From Polymyxa betae A26-41 (lineage: Eukaryota > Protista > Endomyxa: Phytomyxea): 64,000 bases of DNA. Made by a program: the position numbers and the translations under genes. The notes under the pieces were generated by a model that was given only the letters and a program-made list of their open reading frames with translations, had not been told where the DNA came from and did no database searches. Positions 34,178 through 45,715 of this stretch are shown one piece after another. Every line of letters begins with the position of its first letter. Position 1 is the first letter of the stretch. The stretch is taken from assembly GCA_003693705.1 (NCBI GenBank), contig RBZT01000286.1, positions 62,001 through 126,000 on the forward strand, read 5' to 3'.

Positions 34178-35460
34178 ATGGGAATTTCAGGATTGCTGCC
34201 ATTGCTGCGATCGGTCACCGATCAGGTTCATATCTCGACGTATGCCGATCAAACCGTAGCTGTCGATACTTATTGTTGGCTGCATCGAGGTGCTGTTTCT
34301 CACGCTTCTGCTCTTTGCAAAGACCCGAACGCTTCTGATTGTTACATTTCCTTCGTTCTGGGTCGAATTCAGCTTCTTCTCGATGCAAAAGTGAAACCCT
34401 TCCTTGTTTTCGACGGCGGTCTACTACCTTCAAAACAAGACCAAGAACGACTTCGCGCTGAGAAAAGACGAAGCAATTTGCAAAGCGCCATGCGTCTGGA
34501 ATCTTCAGGATTTAAAGCGGCCGCCGAACGCCATTACCGCCAAGCTCTTGATATAACTCCAATGATGGCTAAACGAACAATAGATGCTGTTGAGGCCAAA
34601 TTTAAAGATCGCGTGAGGCTCGTTGTGGCGCCGTATGAAGCTGACGCTCAGCTGACTTGGCTTGTTAACAACGGTCATGCTTCTGCAGCGCTTACAGAAG
34701 ATTCCGATCTGCTTGCCTTCGGTTGCGAGCGAGTATTGTTTAAGCTTGATGGAGCAGGGCGTGTAGATCAGATCTGCTTGAAAAATCTGGGTGCTTGTCA
34801 GCAGCTCGATCTGGCTCGATGGAGTCTGGCTGAATTTCAGCTGATGTGCGTTCTGAGTGGTTGCGATTATTTGGCATCACCCGAAGGGCTTGGGCTGAAG
34901 ACAGCTCACAAGCTGGTTGCTGTGAATCGGTCACCCACTCGTGTCGTCAGGAGACTTCGTCTTCAGGGCAAGTACAAAATCCCAAAGGATTACGCCAACA
35001 GGGTTGCTGAAGCCCTACTTACATTCCAGCATCAGGTCTGAACTGTTGTGTTTTTATGTTGAGCGCATGCTTTTTTCGGTCATCTATGCTTTCAGTTTCT
35101 GACATTTATCGATAGCGCGTTTACGACATCGTTAATAAGAGATTGGTTAATCTATATCCTTTGTCTGATAAAGTCGCTCTCCAAGTTTCACAGGACGATT
35201 TCCTCGGGCCTTACCTAGAGAGCGATGTTGCCACTGAGATAGCAAAAGCCCGCTTGGATCCCATTACACTGAAACCTTTCGCCGATATGAGCGTTCCCAA
35301 TTCGCCTACAAAATGTTTGCCTTCGTCAAGACAAATGATGCCAGAGAAACGCGTGTTTCAGAGCTGTTTTGTTCAGTCTGAACGCATTACACTAAGACGC
35401 CAATATGGGACCGTTCCACGAAATTCTCTGTTTTTTGAACAGTTTCTAAAATTTCATTAA
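34178..35460 (+). CDS. EXO1: Exonuclease 1 (XPG/FEN1 family)
   Basis: MGISGLLPLL, AVDTYCWLHRG, VFDGG.LPSK, VAPYEADAQL, TEDSDLL, LSGCDYL, TFQHQ|RVYD. One intron ~35036-35115. Confidence 0.95.
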
Positions 35461-35635
35461 AAATATATATTAAGTCATACGTTAATGTATTAAAACGATA
35501 AACGAACGAATTGGCTTCAAAGCAAGTTGCTTTTTAAAACAGAAAGGCAAGAACTTTGAAAGAAGCTGAGATAACTCATCTGAGGTGAGCTTATGCGGAG
35601 CGAGAAATGCAGTTTGATTTGTGGAAGACTAACAT

Positions 35636-38600
35636 TTAGCCTTCGGGCTGAACATCAAGACCATCAGGTCTTTTCAATATGGCTTTGACATCAAATTTCT
35701 TGCCGTCTTGGAAACCAAACGCTTGCACAGGAGCGTGCAGCGTTGGGGGCTGAGAATCGAAAGAAATCGAGTTTGCATCATGTAATGGCTGTGCTTGCGA
35801 CCAAGCAGAAGACATAGTTATTGCTGGATTGTTGTCAATGGCGTCAGGAATTGCCGGGATCGCTTCATCGTCTTGGAAACCATCTTGCTCGTTACCTTCG
35901 ATGTGATCTTGCGTTTGTTCTATCGGTAACTTGATTTTTTCGGCTTCAATTCTTTCGCCAATTCGTTCCTGTGTCGCTCGCATTCCGAGTTCACCAAATT
36001 TTTTTGCAGCCATTTTCAGCCCAGGCAGATCGCCTTTCAGCTCGCTCTTTAGAGCGTACCATATATCCAAATGTCGTTGGTTTGCAGTACAATGGTACCA
36101 TTCTTCAAGCAGGCTCCCGATCTCACTAAAAGCTTTAACTCTTGGATGAGATTCCAACCAATGGATCATCTGCATCATCTGGTCTAACACGAACGGTGCC
36201 TTCTCTTCAATGACGCCTTTCATTCTGTATTGCTCAGTTTCTGCTTTAAAGCGAGACAACGATCCACGTCCAGCAATCGGAATACGAAAGAAAAGATAAA
36301 CAGCACTGCAAGCGAAGACATTCAGGATGATCGGAAGGAGTAAGCTGAAGGGAATATCTGGCATCACAGACAAGTTCTTTAGAAGATCGAATAGGTCTAT
36401 GAAGTGACGAAACCCGAGGGGTAAATCGATTGGCTTTCCGATGCGTAGGCGAACGATGAACGACAAAGTTTGTGCCAGAACACTGACATCATCAAGTCTT
36501 GCTGGTACAACAGCGCCTAATACCCAAATAACGATGCGCTCGACGTACCAGCCAGACTTTGGTTCTTTTAAAGTTTGGCTCGATGAAGATACATCATGAT
36601 AGCATGATTTGATTCGCGCTATGTCATTCTTAGGCAGGCAGTCAATTTCATCGAAGGAATTTTGAATCTCTTGCTCGAGTCGCTGATGAAGATAATATCC
36701 TGGGCAGTTGACTGCGCATCGAGTGGGATAAGACTGCTTCTCAAGCCAGATCTGGAAGACCGCTTGTTTGACGTGTACAGATTGCACTGCCGGTATCTTG
36801 CTAATACAGCCGATGGCGCATCCGTGTTCGCTTAAGTTCATGAAATCTGTCGCCAGCTTTGCATATTTAGAATTTAGAGCGGATTGCTCCAAACATTTCC
36901 CAGATCGAGTGAGTTCTGCTAAAAGCTTACGCTCGTAGCCTGCACACTCGAAGCAAGCAATCGCCGCAGCTCCGTCACCGATTGAATGGAAGATTCTTGC
37001 AGCAACTGAGCGTAGCCCGCATTGATTACAAAAATGCCCAGCTGCTTCATTAAAGAGCATCGGGACAGATTGCACGTCAGCACGCTGCCATGATTCGTTG
37101 ATAATTTCAGTGATCGATTCTTCCACGAAATCAGCACCGAGCTCAAGAATCAATCCGGAGCATAATGCAAGCGTGAAAGTGGAAGCACCGGCATAGACTG
37201 AGCTTAAGATAGGGCTAAGATATGTATCCAGATCACCAGAATGAGCAGATTGCAGATCTTTGACAAGCTGATCGTCGAGACAATCGGATAATGACTTTAT
37301 AGTATCTTTGATGCGATCTTGCAAATATTTATGGCAGTTCTCTCTGGTTAAAAGTGAGCCTTTAACAACATATTTCGGTTTCGAAGGGGTTTTAGAACCG
37401 TTCGCTGCAGGGGATTTAGGACCCTTCGCTGCATTTTTCTTTGATTGTTTCCGAATATGAGATGACATTCGAGCTTTGGAATGAGATGCAGCAGGTGGAG
37501 CTCCGGAAACCGACTTGCAAGTTGAAGGGGCTTCAGAAACCCGACTGGAACAAATGTTTGGCTTATCTTTCAGTAAAGGCATTTCCCGTACATGGCATCG
37601 GATGAGATCGGAAAGAACTTCACCAAATAGTTTTCGCTGCGGCTCCGTCAACTCACAGGAAGCTCGAAGCAACTCATATAACCCTGCAACCCATCCAGGA
37701 TTCAAGCGCATTTGGAAGAATGCGATACCGTCATCAATCCATCCAAATTGAATCAAAACCGAAATAAATGCTGTCGTTAGCTTGCCAAATTCGGTCAATC
37801 TTGGGAACTCGTATGCTCCAACAGGAGAGGCTTGATTGAGCCTAATCATATAGTCTTCTAAAGACTTGCAAATGGCTTTAAACATCGTTGATCTCGTCAC
37901 CGGAACCAACCTCAGCAGCCGTGTAATAAGAAAGAAGTGTGAAGCGGTAAAGCTCGATAATGATATAATTGTTCGAGCTAACTTCAATACAATTTTGAGC
38001 GAGATATCAGGATTTAGGTCCTTTTGGAATTGTTCAAGCGCTTCACATGCTTTGTCAAATACGTCTGCGAACATGTAGCATTCGATGACTTCCTGTTCTC
38101 GGCCAGGAAGCAGTTTAGTGTACAAATCAGCAGCTTTCAAGAACTGTTTGGCATCATAAAGATAAGTTGCAGCTAATTCCATTTCGTTGATCTGGACCAA
38201 AAGTTCCGCTGCTTGATAAACATGGTCTGGACATCGAGATATCTCAAATTCCTTAATCAGAATTTTTGCTTCCAATCGTTTCACATTATCGAATTGTTCT
38301 GCTTTAAAAAAAGCATTGCGAGCTTCTCGAAGCAAGCCTGCACATTCATATTGCAAGGCCTTGCATGCCCATTCTTCAATACTGCTCGATCTGCTAAAGC
38401 TCATCTCGCTTTGTGTGGAAGTCCATTGGATCAAGTCCTTGAAGACTTCGACGTAAATTCCGGACTCCTCTTTCCCGCTATCGATAAACAAAAGGCGATG
38501 TTTACAGCGGGTCACCGCCACGTAAAGTTCCTTCAGAAAATGGCATAGTTCGTAATGCTTACGGAAGTCAAATTCCTGAACAACCGAGTTTGATGTGAAG

Positions 38601-41600
38601 TTAAGCAAAACCCGGAGCCGTTGACAACCGACTCCAGAACTCGAAAAAATATTATAGAGAACGACGTCTTCAAACTCCAATCCTTTGACTTCTAGAATAC
38701 TGAGAACTGTGGCTTGCCAGTCATTCGATTGCAGTAAAGTGAGGAGTTCCTCTTTCTGAACAGCATCACGGACGATGATGATTTGTTCAGCAGCGAATTC
38801 GTTCGCATCCGCAAACAGGAAGGACAGTGCCTCGATGGGGTCTTCTTGGAACAATCTGGGTGTGCCGGACCACAGTTCAGGCGGCGGCCTTGCACTGCGC
38901 TCGCCATGAAGCCTGTCTATTTCATCTGGAAAGAAATAACGAATGACATCCAGAATACAATTTGCTAATGCCAAAACTTCCTGAATCGTTCTGTAGTTAA
39001 CAGTGAGATCGAACTGGAGAGGCCTGACAGGTCTATCTTGAGAGGAATCAAACAGGAATGCCTTCAATTTGGGGAATCGAAATCGGTTCCCGGCAGTAAT
39101 GCATTGAGCCTGGTCGCCACAACAAACGAATAGCGTCTTGGGATGACGGAACAAGTCCAATAAGCGCCAATGGCATGGCATTAAGTCTTGAACTTCATCC
39201 AGGTAAATTGCATCAACTGGAGCAATAGTTTGTCTGCGTCGCTCAATAATATTTGCGATGATTTCTGGATAATCGATATGATGCCGATCCAAACGGGTTC
39301 GCTCGTAGCATTTGTACGCATCGTACAGTAGTTTTCGTTGAGATTCAGGAATAGCAGTCATGCTGCTAGACGTTTGTTCAAGCTGGTAGTATTCTTTAGC
39401 CAACATTGGTCGCATGTAATCAGTCCGGTTACCGCCTTTGATTGTAAACATGATTTCGGTAAATATAAATTCAGGAGCGAATAGTTTGCGAACATGGTCC
39501 GAAAGATGTGGGTAATAAACTCGGCGGAATCGATCAAAATCCACGATATCGCCCACTGAGTACAGGTGCCGATGTGGAGCTTTGAGATCCAAATCTTCCT
39601 CGTCATCTTCTTGGCAGATAAGTCGGCGAGACGCACCCATCTCGTAAAACAAACGATGTTGTGGTTCAATTTGGCTATCCACTTGCAAAAGTAGACCCAA
39701 AAGTGAAAGAAAGGTGCAACCAGGATGATCAGGTCGTTCGATATCTTCTTCGTACGTTGCATGAAAAGTATCGATAAGGAGATTGAACTCTTTTCTGACA
39801 CTGTCGATTAACATCGGGCTCACGCTCACGAACAATTGACGAGGGGGATCAAGATTCTGCAGCAGTGCGTTCTTGTAGCCGCTCAATATTCGTTGGGCCT
39901 GCAGACGTGAGTAGATTGAACTATCCATAAACCTACTGTCATTACCAGAACGCTAGTCTTTCCAGAACCGCCGCGACCAACCAGCACAATGGATCCTTTC
40001 GTATACTGGACGGCATCGTTCTGGATGTCATCAAGCAGATAAGGAAGCTGGAAAGAGGCTCTCTTCGCTGAATCAGAAGAAGAGAACATTTCAATAAGCG
40101 GTCCATCGGAGAGGTCGAACAGCTTAATAGAGCCTGAGATGGCATCATCAGCGCCTGCACCGCGCCAAAACTGCTTCGGAAGATTTTTCAACCCAGATTG
40201 TGGACATGCATCGGAGTTGCATTGAATGATACAAGCTGAAAGATATGCATCGTTATATGTCTTACGAAGATCTTTGAAAGCATTCCATGCCGGGAGCAAT
40301 TGGGATTGATTAAGGGGACGGATGGCATAGATCACTTGAGATTCATAGCGAATTTCTACAGTCCAAAGCAGAACCAAGGCACTCTCAACTTTGTTTACAA
40401 GGAACAATTTCCCTAGCACTCCGCCTTCCTTGCGATAAGGACGATGAGTTTCGCTAAAGTCGCCCATTAATAGCTTTGAGAACAAGAGACTGTAAGAGCG
40501 AGTAGTAGAGTCTTTGCAGCGTCGAAGCTCGTTCATAACGGATTCACTTGCGATCAAGTTCCAGACATGGTGATCGCGTCTATCGATCAGACTACGGCCA
40601 GATCGCTTCTTGACACTTTTAGTAGGTTTGGATTCCAGTAATTGCTGCTTCTTCGAGGCCAATACAGCTCGTTGTGCAAATGCACGAATTTTCGGATCAG
40701 AATAATCTGTTGATGGATCAATTTTCCCCAGCGCTCCATTGGATTTACAATGCATTGTAAAGCGGCACCATATTCTTGAGCGATCATCACACAGGAAAAG
40801 CTTTAAATCGCCAAAGACCCAGAGAGCATATTTTGCACGAGTAATCGCCACGTTCATACGATTCCATTGCTCAAGAAAGTTCGTGGTTGTTCCGGTACGG
40901 GTAAGTGAAAAAATGACAATATCACATTCCTGACCTTGGAAACCATCGACAGTACTAACTTTAATATCAGCTGAGAGTACAATCTGGCTCTTGAGATCTT
41001 CAATTCTTTGCTCCAGTACGCGCTTCTGTGCAATATATGGGCATATTACACCAATCTTTAAGCGTTCCTTGGGAACTGAGAGTAGAAATTTTCCAAGATG
41101 AAGGGCAATCAGCAGCGACTCATCATTGTTGAACCAGCTACCATTTCTATCGGAGGCGCAGGACGTTTTTTTGTGAGTGACGAATTGTAACGGCGGGAAC
41201 CGGTCGGAATACCATGAAGGACGGTAGGACTGAACACTGGCGCTATCTTCGATCCGACCTTCATAGAATGTGGCATTGGGAAATGCCGAAATCGAAGGGT
41301 GCATTCGGTATTGGACCGCCAATAAATGAATCGGATGCAATTCCGCTAGCCGTTCGAAGAGACTTCGTTGATAGGCTGCCTCAAGACAGAACTGAGAGAA
41401 GACTGTTCCGTGCAGCTGTCGAGGGTCTCCAACCAGAATTAAGGATTTCAGGCTCGCCTTTACAAGCCCAACCATCTCGGCCTCTATTGCTTGGGCACAC
41501 TCATCGACTATGGCAGCTTCAAAGGGAATAGGAATCATTAATGGAGACTTGCTGGCGCTTAATGTACAAAAGATAAGCGAAGCTTTCTTCAGAAATTCTT

Positions 41601-43029
41601 GCTCTAGTTCGGAAACCAGAAGCGGATTGAATTCGCCAAGGACATCTTGTGTGAGATTGGTTGCCGAGAACACCTGCAGCTCGCGAATTCTGGCTGCTAC
41701 TACGTTGTAATTGCCTGTAAGCGCGCCTGACCGAATTTTGCCCACCGGAAGGGTGACGTTTGCGAACAGTGGGTTTAAAGATGAATCATCCCAGGCCTCG
41801 ATAACGTTCAGAACAGATTTCAGACAACTTGCTTGAATCAGTTGCTCATCACACGATGGCTCTCCACTGACTTTATCCCGAACATCGTCGATGAGAGCGA
41901 CAAGCCGATCTATCATTGTTTTAGCCTGAGCGTATTGTTAACTAAAGCTAAGATTCCAGCAAAACGCCCTACCGATTGTAATAGACGATGGATGCGAGAG
42001 CTCAGAATGTATTCGTCGAGGCTATCAACGATCAATGCTTTAATGTTTGGGCGAGAAGTGTTGACGATAATGACGATTCGTTCTGATTCGATATCGTCAG
42101 GTTTCTGAGCAATCAACTTTTTCGCCACGTCAAGAACGGCGATGTTAGTCGGAGCTACCTGAATAATGCGCTTGGATTGCAACAGAAGCGCCGTTAATAA
42201 TGCAACAATACACGTTGTTTTCCCGGTGCCTAACTTATATGAGACAGCTAACAGACAATACGGGCGGCTCACCTGGGGGTCCTTGAATGAGTTCTACTGA
42301 ACCAGGACGTGAAACGGCACCAAGACAAGCATGAACAGCCAAGAGCTGCGACTCGTTTAGACTAGAAAGCATTCCGTGAATTCGATGATCGAATGTCATC
42401 ATAGAAGTGACAGGATGAACAGGAGCTTGGCAGGAGAGGATTAATTGCTTGAGCTCCTGATTAATATTCTCTTCAGCAAACATTGCATTAGTTTTGTGAA
42501 AATCGAGCGATTTCAATATTCGGTAAGTGGTTGTTGCAGAGTCAACTTTGGCAGCATACGCGATTGGAGTGTTGCACATAAATGAGAAAAGCTCGCAATG
42601 AACGATGCTGGCATCTTTCTTATCTCTCGAATTAACAAGCATCCATCCGCATCCGCACCATATTTCGGAAGATTCTCCAATCTCCTTAAACTGTGGGTCG
42701 TCAGCTGAAATCAGGCAAATATCCCCCGGCTTTAGAGATCCGATTGGATCGTGAACAAAGATGGAACCTCTTTTCGATTCAGAGCGCACCGTTATTGAGC
42801 GGAAGATGATTTCGACTTCATCGAATTCAGTGAGCTTTCGTGCTAAACTGGATCGGAAATTCTCCAATGTTGGAAGAAAAAATGATTGAAGATAACTTTG
42901 CCAACTTTTGGCTTTCCTCGGAATCGGGTTGATATTGCACGCCCATGGATGGTCTTCGGCAAAGAGTTGCTCCCAGGTCAAATTCAGGACAGGATGAATT
43001 ACGTCCCAGCAGGGCGGATCAGGTGGCAT
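35636..43029 (-). CDS. ~2,400-aa dual SF1 helicase: Upf1/Sen1-like helicase + RelE-like domain + UvrD/TRANK1-like helicase + TPR-like repeats (4 exons)
   Basis: Introns ~42231-42273, ~41926-41971 and ~39899-39945 join four ORFs in frame. Helicase 1: GPPGTGKTT, APTNIAV, DECAQ, VGDPRQL, QYRMHP, TVDGFQG, NVAITRAK. Helicase 2: GRGGSGKT, DEVQD, GDQAQCI, VNYRT, KGLEF, LYVAVTR. Confidence 0.9.
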
Positions 43030-43244
43030 CAGGACTGCAACAATGTTTGTTGGTCAAATGGGGACACCTCATGACGTTTCGACAGGCTGCGCGCACAACC
43101 CGTGTTACATGTCGCTACCTGACCTGGTCACATGCTAAGCGCAACCCTTGAAGCTTTGAATAGTTTTAGTTTGCGAAGTTCGCGGAGCCTCTCCTGTACA
43201 GTCACGAATCATTAGGCTTGCACGCATCCAACTATTATACAATC

Positions 43245-43829
43245 ATGAAAAGGGAGACACAAAACATGATATCAACCTGTATTTTCTTTGAAGTTAAATC
43301 AAACTCGTCCCTTTGTGGTCAAATTTCTACACCAGCGTAATCGCACGACACTGTTCCCGTTCTCATGCCAAACGAAGGTTTCACGATCGTCCAACAAGGT
43401 CACTCGCTTGCAGGATCGCATGCTGATGGACCTTATCGTGATACGACCAAGATCCGGCCTATCACTGCTGCAGACGATGTCAAGTATTACAGTGCATCAA
43501 ACTCGTGCGAATATACTTCAGTTATCGTCAGATTGGGCAATGATTTGCCAAGACGCTATAGCTTAAGTAGAGATTGGCTCAGATATGAATAGTTCAAAGA
43601 CATGCCAATCCTGTTTCCTGCATGATTGTATGAAAAACTTGACAAACTTCTAGAATCAGATAGTTTGGTAGCGCAGCATGAAGATGCTTTCTCCAGCGAC
43701 ATTAAATTGATACCGATGAAACTACGACCTTTTACAAATTCTCACAATATGATGGTGAGAACGGCCGCCTTTCTGAGCTTTTTGTGGGACTCACTCAGTA
43801 AAAACCTGTTGTGCGGAACAGCGATTTAG
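43245..43829 (+). pseudogene. Decayed reading frame of unknown family
   Basis: The ATG at 43245 and ORFs 43365-43592 and 43626-43829 share one frame interrupted by three isolated stops. Confidence 0.3.
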
Positions 43830-44405
43830 CGACCAGTCGACCAATTCTTTTCATTTAACAGAGCTCGGACGATTCATGCAAACTGTCTATGATCAGCATA
43901 CAAATTCAGCTAATCAGCTTGACCATTTCGGCAATGAATCAAGTTGTTCTTGTATCGTCCAGGACGCCATGGTTGTCCAACGGCAACTGTTAATATTGTT
44001 CTATGTGAATAGTTCGGTTCGGATTCTCTAAGTTTGCCATTTTTGTGCAACAACCATGAACGATGCAGTCTGATAGTGCAACATAACGAGATGCCCACGT
44101 CATAAGCATCCACTGCTTGACATTAGCAACCGCTATGCGGTTTGCTCATAATCCCAGAACGTGTACCGACATAAATGAGGTGGTTGTGCTCCCAGTCCGG
44201 CTACCTGCAATGCGGCATCTCATGAAGACAGACAACCGAATGGTTGAAATATTCCAATAGCCGCATAATCTCTGCTCCGTGATAGATCCAATCCGCTATC
44301 AATAACGTTACTCCGTCGGCCTGAAGAGCGCCCAGATATCTTGACCTTCATTGCTTAAGATATCAGGGGGCAGGCGTTAGCGCTTTGGTGGCGAAATCGG
44401 CCGGA

Positions 44406-45715
44406 ATGATGCGATTCCGAGGACTGCCCACGTCGCCGAGTGCATCACCTACTCGATCGGCCGATTCGTCGCAATCCCCTTCCAGGGGACGTTTGCTCGA
44501 CACCAGCGCATTTCGATGGGCAATTTTTTTCATCGCTCTGGTCGTTATTCTTTTCCTGCCGTACACCCTCGCTGCTCGCCTGCTTAAAACAATGCGATTT
44601 CTGAATGTCCAACCGATGGACATGTCGAGATACTGCCAACGACGCTATTCCAACAGCACGCTGGAACTTGGTGATGGTTCGTATTTTATAGCCCTTAACC
44701 TTCATAACAGCGACAAGGTTGTGCCATATATCATACCACAGATTCAACGCCTTGTGGACATCCTTGGATCGCAACGAGTTTTTGTATCTATATATGAAAG
44801 CGGCAGCGTTGACAGTACTGGACGCTGGATCCTGTTATATCGGCAATATCTTCAGTCGAATGACATTCCACATGAAATCATATCCGACAACCGCGTCCGA
44901 GGACGAAGCCAACATCGAATCGATTATCTTGCAACTGTTCGCAACACAGTCATGGCACCTTTGTACACAGGAAAATTCAAAGCCGACTTTGTCGTATTCA
45001 TCAATGACGTAGTCTGTGGTTTTATCTTCCGACTTGGTTTCTTTCTGATTTGTGGCTGTAGTATTTCTGTGCTGAAGATGTATCGCGACTGGCCCAGCGA
45101 GTTCGCCTGGGCAACGACGTCAGTATGGCTTGCGGTCTGGATATAGCAGCGGACAGGTTTCGTGACATCCTGTTCTACGACACTTGGGTCTGCAGAGATA
45201 TGGTGGGCGGCTCGCTTCATGGAAAGTTTCCTTTCTTCAACCGCAAATCTGACATCGAACGGATACGACAAGGGCTTCCGGTTCCCGTATATGCCTGTTG
45301 GAATGGGTTGGTCGTAATCGACGCCTCCGTATTTTCCAAGATCAGATTCCGATCTGCACCTGGCGATGCGTGTCTCTCGTCCGAATGCACTCTGTTTTGC
45401 CAGGACGTCTGGGAAGTGGCGCCTGGCAATATCTTGATCGACCCTGCTGTTTACGTGGTTTATGAGCAATATACTGCTGAGCGTATGCTGCAATATCCTG
45501 TTGAAGGTCTCGGGTTGACGGATCTTCCTGTTTTGGGGACATTCCCCGATCACGAACCGCGACCGACAGCTTACGGATGCTACCCCATGGTTGGTCTTGA
45601 TTCATTTTCTTCACCCCGAAGAAGAGTTCCTGAACCGGCGACACGCTTGCCCAATTCGTTTTGGTTTAACGAGAAGCTCTATGTTTCTGACAACGACTTT
45701 GTGCCTTATTTTTGA
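44406..45715 (+). CDS. CAP59/Cmt1-like alpha-1,3-mannosyltransferase (GT69), type II membrane protein
   Basis: TM anchor, YFIALNLHNS, VFVSIYESGSVD, RIDYLATVRN, VVFINDV, MACGLD, FYDTWVCRD, VYACWNG, SECTL. One intron ~45010-45061. Confidence 0.9.

Follow-up and report, generated by a model that had tools for sequence, protein, structure and literature searches.

Four minus-strand open reading frames (42235-43029, 41913-42272, 39883-41916 and 35636-39928) follow one another in the 64,000-nucleotide stretch of Polymyxa betae DNA analysed here (the window). They raise the question of whether they form a single gene and, if so, what kind of nucleic-acid machine that gene would encode. The initial annotation had spliced them into one protein of ~2,400 aa, with two helicases, a central toxin-like domain and a long TPR-like C-terminus, and had proposed a defence or surveillance function. 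Here we find that all four belong to a single transcribed gene, whose 2,418-aa product is a member of the TRANK1-type helicase family in an N-terminally extended dual-helicase form. The overall reading that we favour, with a probability of about 0.6, is that of a transcribed dual-helicase gene whose product would be a two-motor translocase with a RelE-fold module and a proposed role in RNA surveillance.

A single transcript contig spans the gene

Three GT..AG introns join the four reading frames (Table 1), and the coding exons of 757 + 257 + 1980 + 4260 nt add up to 7254 nt, or 2418 codons, with an in-frame stop 8 codons ahead of the start ATG. The transcript basis for splicing is one contig of run X1, 8617 nt long, which covers the entire gene and thereby bears out the claim of a single gene for a single giant protein. 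Introns 1 and 3 were absent from this contig, as was a leader intron that the initial annotation had not predicted. The proposed assembly thus stood as regards the reading frames, the codon count and two of the three expected junctions, whereas intron 2 was retained in the contig, a point to which we return below. Searches and comparisons of the 2,418-aa product were made exon by exon. No Rfam family was found in 35000-44500. The raw RNA runs X16, X17 and X11 contributed 0 reads to the stretch and thus have no bearing on its splicing.

Table 1 Features of the locus, in window coordinates
Feature	Position	Strand	Remarks
Upstream leader exon	43277..44264	-	5' UTR, or an overlapping non-coding transcript fused to it by the assembly
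Leader intron, 45 nt, GT..AG	43232..43276	-	absent from X1 contig
Leader portion of first coding exon	43030..43231	-	5 upstream ATGs
Coding exon 1	42273..43029	-	start codon, N-terminal domain (aa 13-252), start of helicase 1 through GPPG
Intron 1, 43 nt	42230..42272	-	interrupts Walker A (GPPG/TGKT); absent from X1 contig
Coding exon 2	41973..42229	-	helicase 1 Walker A and motif Ia region; Pfam AAA_11 1.3e-6
Predicted intron 2, 47 nt, GTAGGG..CTCAG	41926..41972	-	frame requires removal; kept in X1 contig
Coding exon 3	39946..41925	-	remaining helicase 1, RelE-like domain, linker, helicase 2 Q motif and Walker A
Intron 3, 47 nt	39899..39945	-	right after helicase 2 Walker A (GKTSVL/AQR); absent from X1 contig
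Coding exon 4, 4260 nt	35639..39898	-	stop codon 35636-35638
3' UTR	35513..35635	-	end inferred from contig collinearity; record position 2488 = window 38000
Helicase 1, Upf1/Sen1-like SF1B core	40804..42366	-	across introns 1 and 2
Predicted RelE/ParE-fold domain (beta-alpha-alpha-beta-beta-beta)	40303..40569	-	exon 3 residues 450-538; AF2 model
Helicase 2, TRANK1-type UvrD-like SF1A core	38429..40053	-	across intron 3
Conserved TPR-like helical region, ~150 aa	37979..38428	-	after helicase 2
Ser/Lys/Pro/Ala-rich low-complexity linker	37379..37573	-	composition
Lineage-specific C-terminal region, ~580 aa	35639..37378	-

Both helicase cores are complete

The motifs of helicase 1, read from the translations, are all intact (GPPG/TGKT, DECAQ, GDPRQL, QYRMHP, DGFQGQE and ITRAK). 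Its proposed identity as an Upf1/Sen1-type SF1B helicase was confirmed by the expected Pfam matches to AAA_11 and AAA_12, the latter in exon 3 at 1.3e-51, and structure-chain matches included 8ftm (1.7e-47), Sen1 (1e-38) and Upf1 (2e-36); no paper on PDB entries 8FTM, 8FTH and 8FTK was found in the literature searched. Core motifs and fold family are common to helicase 1 and Upf1, Sen1 and IGHMBP2, but the CH zinc-knuckle and other accessory domains of Upf1 or Sen1 were not detected by Pfam. Instead of an Upf1 CH (Cys/His) domain, which was absent by Pfam search, exon 1 aligns with the N-terminal domains of chytrid and plant homologues, beginning at their residue 2-3; this N-terminal domain had no Pfam match, DUF6469 included. 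Lacking the CH domain, and with other, more canonical Upf1-like genes present separately in the genome, the gene was rejected as the Upf1 orthologue.

Helicase 2 likewise retains every motif as read from the translations (GRGGSGKT, DEVQD, GDQAQ, NYRT, KGLEF and VTRCK). It matched Pfam UvrD-helicase (8.8e-6), as anticipated, and sloth TRANK1 in pairwise BLASTP (E 3e-26), and it was placed inside the TRANK1-type family tree, in agreement with its earlier assignment as a TRANK1-type UvrD-like SF1A motor. Among solved UvrD-type helicases only HelD matched (0.03). A family search with helicase 2 gathered 62 proteins from plants, fungi, animals, algae, ciliates and dinoflagellates. Animal TRANK1 has this second helicase and the RelE-like domain that precedes it in common with the window protein, and has a TPR region after them, but carries ankyrin repeats and is without the Upf1-like helicase; in the window protein, no Ank family of Pfam matched any exon.

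The domain between the motors is predicted to adopt a RelE/ParE fold

The AF2 model of the central domain reached a modest pLDDT of 62.7 (70-80 in the core), and Foldseek returned RelE/ParE-type chains as its best matches (Cami1, BrnT, YafQ and RelE), as would be expected of the toxin-like domain claimed earlier. When the predicted model was compared with 48,161 solved chains using VIA-align, all of the best 22 matches belonged to the RelE/ParE superfamily (Z 5.0-7.8), the best chain being 1wmi_C (Z 7.8, rmsd 2.5 over 82 of 88 residues). Judging from these models, the central domain is predicted to have a RelE/ParE fold. Leave-out family HMMs recovered the domain in TRANK1 (5e-17 to 5e-15) and, once the rows of the window, the chytrids and the metagenome had been withheld, at residues 452-562 of exon 3 (28.2 bits). 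The domain sits immediately ahead of the UvrD-like helicase across plants, fungi, green algae and animals. At the level of sequence models, neither the window domain nor its short relatives matched any Pfam family for RelE, ParE, HigB or YoeB at E ≤ 10.

Across 59 sequences of the domain, the only columns conserved at ≥70% were W4, L35, G38, Q85 and C120. No basic, His or acidic column was conserved family-wide in this set, and the window domain is without a strand arginine that is common in its relatives. Of the toxin-like description the predicted fold is supported; an effector role finds no support in catalytic columns or Pfam matches. To our knowledge, a cognate antitoxin is not to be expected for an internal RelE-like domain. 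RelE active sites are themselves variable (PMC11090510). Most likely, the domain is an RNA-, ribosome- or partner-binding module and not a canonical RelE RNase.

The TPR-like region is conserved and the tail is lineage-specific

Behind helicase 2, the conserved TPR-like region was matched by phmmer to a Rhizoclosmatium fragment (P0024, 4e-16) and to plant proteins (about 1e-4), and a weak match to Pfam TPR_IF140-IFT172 (0.005) was the sole hit among five C-terminal slices. The long TPR-like C-terminus of the initial annotation is supported in part, by these ~150 aa with their weak TPR matches, whereas the last ~780 aa showed no similarity to any homologue, the chytrid relatives included. The tail had no Pfam or PDB sequence match, no internal repeat and no match to an HMM of plant tails, and an Atlas search produced leads only (0.77-0.87). 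The Ser/Lys-rich linker is disordered and basic, and a strongly hydrophobic segment is found in the tail at 36278-36352 (hydropathy 2.3).

The two motors share an old history

The window protein has its nearest relatives in chytrid fungi, in proteins with this layout, namely HDU76_005415 of Blyttiomyces (2380 aa; P0003), HDU96_003863 of Phlyctochytrium bullatum and HDU79_010975 of Rhizoclosmatium, with plant dual helicases next. Exons 1, 3 and 4 are collinear with the Blyttiomyces protein (36% identity over 592 aa for exon 3), and exon 2 aligns with its residues 225-315. A metagenome locus, L024, is collinear with the gene as well, and its equivalents of the first three exons form one open frame. 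The chytrid proteins and L024/P0002 have the same domain order as the window protein from the first residue to the start of the TPR region, at 33-36% identity by BLASTP and 41-45% over the trimmed tree alignments, and fall into one clade with it for both helicases; they differ from it in intron positions, as well as in the tail described above. A 58-nt intron of L024, for example, sits five codons upstream of the intron 3 position.

In plants, the dual helicases have the N-domain, Upf1-like helicase, RelE-like domain and UvrD-like helicase of the window protein, followed by TPR where the latter has its TPR-like region, but they form a separate clade, carry DUF6469 (undetected in the window) and have unrelated tails. 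They are labelled 'UvrD-like helicase ATP-binding domain-containing protein', with some named TRANK1 or 'helicase magatama 3'. The earlier statement that similar fusions occur in plants was thus correct, and it extends to chytrids. Separate phylogenies of the two helicases were congruent and grouped the window protein with chytrids in both; because both motors give the same tree, the SF1B and SF1A motors have descended as a pair since an old fusion. Relatives also carry Death and PARP modules, and a TRAF zinc-finger match lay just under the Pfam cutoff. A metagenome scan with exon 3 returned generic Upf1-like loci only, at ~30% identity.

The gene adds a further member to a family that is catalogued but uncharacterised, and shows the TRANK1 type in its fullest form. 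It indicates that the family core includes, as a conserved element, a toxin-shaped domain with a predicted RelE/ParE fold, and it shows that motors of the 5'-3' and 3'-5' types have stayed linked through deep evolutionary time. Human TRANK1 is a disease-association gene. In the literature searched we found no known function for TRANK1 and no study of its plant, fungal or protist relatives; searches on DUF6469, on TRANK1 with UvrD-like and on TRANK1 with Arabidopsis yielded nothing relevant.

A proposed role in RNA surveillance

Given this architecture, the product may be a single-chain, two-motor nucleic-acid translocase. With the polarity usual for each class, the SF1B motor would move 5'-3' and the SF1A motor 3'-5'. 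On a duplex or forked substrate, the motors could then advance in one direction, each on its own strand, like RecB and RecD. RecBCD combines the SF1A motor RecB (3'-5') and the SF1B motor RecD (5'-3') in one machine, and pairs SF1 motors of both polarities as proposed here; the analogy is mechanistic only, and the RecBCD motors are separate subunits that work on DNA ends, with the RecB nuclease. The RelE-fold domain between the motors could bind RNA, the ribosome or a partner, and the TPR region and tail might recruit further partners.

Domain associations in relatives and prokaryotic analogues make a defence or surveillance role plausible. CnuH of Type II/III-A CoCoNuT systems joins an Upf1-like SF1 helicase to a RelE-fold RNase toxin-like domain and is predicted to target RNA (PMC11090510). 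By its published description, it resembles the window protein in having the Upf1-like helicase and the RelE-fold domain in one chain, but its RelE-fold domain lies before the helicase and not after it, it has no UvrD-like second motor, and it belongs to a McrBC-type operon. A prokaryotic RelE-helicase fusion also adjoins Tiamat. Models of two defence systems matched the window protein (MkoA 1.4e-52, GajB 4.5e-9), which points to shared helicase superfamilies only, not to defence membership. Mokosh or Gabija membership was rejected, as the matches are confined to the helicase core of an intron-bearing eukaryotic gene with no operon. By analogy, and from the domain associations in relatives, the most likely biological role appears to be an immune-like one, in which aberrant or foreign RNA is kept under surveillance.

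The position of helicase 1 nearest to Sen1 and Upf1, the age of the helicase 2 family (plants to dinoflagellates), the single full copy in the genome and the lack of a conserved catalytic signature in the RelE-like domain would also suit a housekeeping helicase like Sen1 or Upf1. Such a protein would act in control of R-loops or transcription termination, in RNA decay or in repair, with no immune-like role and with RelE-fold and TPR parts that are structural only. We consider this rather unlikely, in view of a patchy and fast-diverging family whose nearest relatives are 33-41% identical and whose tail is unique here, of two decayed paralogous fragments that point to gene birth and death, of the Death and PARP modules in relatives, and of the separate, more canonical Upf1-like genes.

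Beyond RNA surveillance by a two-motor translocase, a broader conjecture, to which we assign a low probability, is that all TRANK1-type proteins, the human one included, go back to an ancestral core made up of the RelE/ParE-fold domain followed by the UvrD-like motor, and that the family is to eukaryotes what helicase-RelE conflict systems are to prokaryotes. The dual form would then be a single-chain bipolar motor that loads on RNA that is foreign or aberrant and possibly bound to ribosomes, with the RelE-fold module clamping or cutting it and variable C-terminal modules (Death, PARP or the parasite tail) delivering the response. The locus thus offers testable hypotheses, namely bipolar translocation and binding of RNA or the ribosome by the RelE-fold domain; in the parasite itself, the gene may be regarded as a candidate handler of foreign RNA.

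The retained intron and the output of the gene

Retention of intron 2 in the X1 contig, whose piece 39945-42228 is continuous with 0 gaps, leads to an in-frame TGA at 41915-41913. Because the full protein needs removal of this intron and the contig keeps it, output of full protein may be low or regulated. The intron is of the same size class as the three confirmed ones, and the corresponding part of L024 reads as a single open frame; the exon 2/3 junction is not fixed by homology, as this stretch is poorly conserved. At its 5' side, the contig extends 764 nt past 43500, so that the far end of the leader exon is inferred from the length of the contig. The sequence of this exon is unique in the genome and includes 22 upstream ATGs but no ORF >67 aa.

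With the 47 nt kept and no gap in that piece, a donor (GTAGGG) weaker than those of the confirmed introns, 27 upstream ATGs in the leader and decayed copies elsewhere in the genome, the gene might no longer be productive. The shift of frame from exon 2 to exon 3 would then be a real disruption in a decaying gene, which would give a truncated N-terminal peptide or a product without the helicase 1 Walker A. This is quite improbable, however, as the remaining frames are open for 2,418 codons and every helicase motif is preserved to either side of the interruption. The 47-nt segment itself shares the length of the confirmed introns, begins with GT, ends with AG and contains a TTAAC branch-like site, and relatives encode the region as one frame. 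In addition, the share of sampled words present is lower in two RNA runs (0.92 and 0.90), as expected if a third intron is removed, which we only infer from these values.

Origin and copy number

The initial annotation had also placed the gene in an accessory island, in keeping with a mobile or fast-evolving gene. Recent acquisition of this kind, for instance from a chytrid or a virus, is very improbable: it would fit the grouping of both helicases with chytrid fungi and not with other protists (SH-aLRT 99), the scarcity of introns across 7.3 kb of coding sequence and the lack of a plasmodiophorid orthologue in any search, but branches are long (0.8-1.2 changes per site) with identities of at most 41-45%, GC and GC3 are ordinary and match those of neighbouring genes, the four spliceosomal introns are of host type, the flanks are not repeated and bear no direct or inverted repeats, a viral scan found no relative, the gene is present in a single full copy, and a control with the neighbouring EXO1 likewise gave no plasmodiophorid protein. 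Because of this control result, absence of the gene from related parasites cannot be claimed.

Besides the full copy, the genome contains the two decayed paralogous fragments, beside which the ORFs showed no Pfam domain. For the lineage-specific C-terminal region, a partial paralogous relic is present on contig C964.

A single transcription unit with a retained middle intron

The initial annotation had proposed that four separate ORFs splice in frame into one protein of ~2,400 aa. The window does hold four ORF pieces on the minus strand which, joined across predicted GT..AG introns, give exons of 757 + 257 + 1980 + 4260 nt, or 7254 nt and 2418 codons if intron 2 is removed as predicted. Protein analyses were run exon by exon via window coordinates. 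The start codon at 43029 is supported, since exon 1 begins to align at residue 2-3 of chytrid and plant relatives and the frame is closed by a stop a short way upstream.

Words sampled from the junction regions were 90-95% present in six public runs from two studies and reached 100% in none of the six, as spliced RNA assemblies would give. In one of the RNA runs (X1), a single contig of 8617 nt matches the window collinearly, starting at ~35513 and reaching at least 44264, so that the locus is one transcription unit and not two genes. Three raw RNA runs yielded no reads and do not bear on the splicing. The X1 contig, which is the one transcript contig analysed, lacks exactly introns 1 and 3, together with a 45-nt leader intron (43276-43232), but is continuous over 39945-42228; the middle 47-nt intron (41926-41972) is thus retained, and in this form a TGA is read at 41915-41913. 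The transcript therefore bears out the proposed splicing at the two outer junctions and departs from it at the middle one. We favour the view that 41926-41972 is a real intron whose removal is needed for the reading frame, because its size class and end signals match those of the three confirmed introns, both flanks have open frames with intact motifs, and the equivalent of exons 1-3 at a related metagenome locus (L024) is a single 962-aa open frame. Its retention may reflect regulated or inefficient splicing.

Upstream of the start codon, the transcribed leader of 1.2 kb contains 27 ATGs. Either this is an unusually long, uORF-laden leader with strongly restrained translation, or a separate non-coding transcript from further upstream has been merged into the contig. 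Genome and X1 contig differ by a lone A>G mismatch in 5.5 kb (window 39368), which indicates either that the isolates are nearly identical or that both sequences share one source.

Features of the gene and of related fragments (G000, this genome; C232 and C964, its contigs; L014 and L015, loci extracted around the C964 and C232 fragments)
Feature	Coordinates	Strand	Description
Transcribed leader region	43030-44264	minus	co-transcribed with the helicase gene; lies between helicase and GT69 gene
Intron 1	42272-42230	minus	43 nt, GT..AG; splits GPPG from TGKT
Intron 2 (predicted, middle)	41972-41926	minus	47 nt, GT..AG
RelE-like domain	40303-40569 (exon 3 residues ~450-538)	minus	predicted fold
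Intron 3	39945-39899	minus	47 nt, GT..AG; after GKTSVL
Hydrophobic segment	36278-36352	minus	25 residues, Kyte-Doolittle hydropathy 2.3
Decayed paralogous fragment	G000:C232:9585-10308 (L015 7815-8544)		~50% identity to exon 4 residues 4-265
Weaker tail fragment	G000:C964:18640-19131 (L014 8647-9129)		25% identity to tail residues 1083-1248

Two complete motors and a predicted RelE/ParE fold between them

Both SF1 motif sets described in the initial annotation are complete and intact. Helicase 1 has all SF1B motifs and matches Pfam AAA_11 and AAA_12 (AAA_12 1.3e-51), its nearest solved structures being a fungal '5'-3' RNA helicase-like protein', followed by Sen1, Upf1 and IGHMBP2. Helicase 2 has all SF1A motifs within a very divergent UvrD-like core (Pfam match 8.8e-6), for which HelD was the sole match in the PDB (0.03). 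PADLOC matches to MkoA and GajB were rejected as identifications, the likeness extending only to the level of the helicase superfamily.

The region between the motors matched no Pfam family. An AlphaFold2 model built from eight relatives has the order beta-alpha-alpha-beta-beta-beta-alpha (pLDDT 62.7), and the top Foldseek rows for it, with weak E-values, were Cami1, BrnT, YafQ, RelE and HigB. Cami1 is a RelE-type defence nuclease that depends on the ribosome. When the model was aligned structurally with 48,161 chains, ranks 1-22 were all RelE/ParE-superfamily toxins, with Z falling from 7.8 to 5.0 and matches spanning nearly whole toxin chains. With moderate confidence, the model thus points to a RelE/ParE fold, in keeping with the central toxin-like domain first proposed, as far as fold alone is concerned. 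Canonical RelE RNase activity seems unlikely, because no basic, histidine or acidic column is conserved family-wide and the window domain lacks an arginine common in one strand among relatives; active sites vary across the RelE/ParE superfamily (PMC11090510). Helicase fusions go unmentioned in a survey of multidomain RelE/ParE toxins.

Of the long TPR-like C-terminus originally described, ~150 aa after helicase 2 show conservation with relatives and weakly match TPR models, but the rest (a helical stretch, then a linker rich in Ser and Lys, then ~580 aa at exon 4 residues 851-1430) found no match among homologues, Pfam families or PDB chains. The hydrophobic segment in the tail may form a membrane helix or a helix buried in a core. 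A similarly hydrophobic helix occurs in plant relatives, in tails otherwise unrelated to that of the window.

A catalogued family sharing the RelE-like and SF1A core

The best matches of exon 4 were chytrid proteins (2035-2380 aa) that share its Pfam layout, followed by plant proteins and one Tetrahymena protein. Sloth TRANK1 aligns directly with exon 4 (E 3e-26), as expected from the suggestion that the second helicase is of TRANK1 type, and dual helicases occur in plants as well. The RelE-like domain alone as query retrieved six cluster representatives out of 1.84 billion, comprising only chytrid proteins and small metagenome fragments. A family search with the RelE-like and helicase-2 region of a chytrid homologue, admitting longer proteins, found 62 relatives. 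Chytrids, plants and one dinoflagellate have dual helicases, many Basidiomycota and Ascomycota have UvrD-only forms, and the forms of animals (TRANK1) and green algae bear ankyrin repeats; ciliate proteins were also among the 62. In public annotation of the chytrid Rhizoclosmatium globosum, ORY44846-ORY44849 (P0026, P0022, P0018, P0024) are four adjacent gene models; a sister species has the same dual-helicase region as one gene (P0023, 2083 aa).

In almost all of these proteins, a locally iterated HMM locates the RelE-like domain right in front of the UvrD-like core, so that the conserved family core comprises the RelE-like domain, the SF1A helicase and TPR, with the Upf1-like helicase added N-terminally in some lineages. 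Built without animals, the HMM still detects TRANK1 (5e-17 to 5e-15), and without window, chytrid and metagenome rows it still detects the window domain (28.2 bits). Residues ~770-1000 of animal TRANK1 (P0067, P0071-P0074, P0080), directly before the UvrD-like helicase, are accordingly homologous to the window's RelE-fold domain. We found no literature mention of this homology. That a RelE-like domain forms part of the TRANK1 core is the most interesting by-product of the analysis and needs independent confirmation. Literature searches turned up nothing on this eukaryotic family, which is catalogued but uncharacterised and to which the gene adds a new member.

The separate phylogenies proposed for the two helicases were run as quick maximum-likelihood trees (62 rows for helicase 2, 25 for helicase 1) and agree, so that both motors have been inherited as one unit since an old fusion. 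The window's protein clusters with three chytrid proteins and the related metagenome locus (L024/P0002) at SH-aLRT 99, plant proteins cluster with a different chytrid protein, and a Upf1-like paralogue of the same genome falls far outside. Given the long branches and identities of at most 41-45%, a transfer between chytrids and this lineage, if there was one, would lie far in the past; vertical descent accompanied by losses is no less possible. Within L024 5990-6100, the related gene carries a 58-nt intron inside the helicase 2 Walker A. It lies five codons away from intron 3 of the window, and the offset could reflect intron sliding or independent gain.

A possible role in conflict or surveillance

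Where the window has its tail, relatives carry Death and PARP domains: a metagenome protein (P0065) has a C-terminal Death domain and Symbiodinium 'Trank1' (P0076) a PARP catalytic domain. A 4098-aa Effrenium protein (P0035) has a TRAF zinc-finger match just below the Pfam cutoff. By analogy with these modules and with Cami1 as a RelE-type defence nuclease, we favour, as a hypothesis, a conflict or surveillance role for the gene. The same role is suggested by prokaryotic systems predicted to target RNA, in which Upf1-like helicases are combined with RelE-fold domains (PMC11090510). Our working model is a bipolar motor that would act on RNA, with the RelE-fold module for binding and the tail as scaffold; its two motors are likened to the opposite-polarity motors of RecB and RecD, here in one chain.

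An ordinary genomic setting with relics of paralogues

The initial interpretation was right in part, with architecture, family and toxin-like fold upheld, but the mobile or accessory character it gave the gene is unsupported: GC and GC3 agree with those of neighbouring genes, the flanks show neither direct nor inverted repeats, the sequence upstream occurs only once in the genome, and no viral relatives were found. No search returned a plasmodiophorid orthologue, an absence that is uninformative because a control with the neighbouring EXO1 returned no plasmodiophorid protein either.

The genome has one full copy. The C232 fragment, interrupted by in-frame stops and a frameshift, lies on a contig of 11.8 kb in which no genes can be recognised. 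The C964 fragment, which takes in the hydrophobic segment and is surrounded only by short ORFs, is probably another relic, and the two together hint at past duplication and loss.
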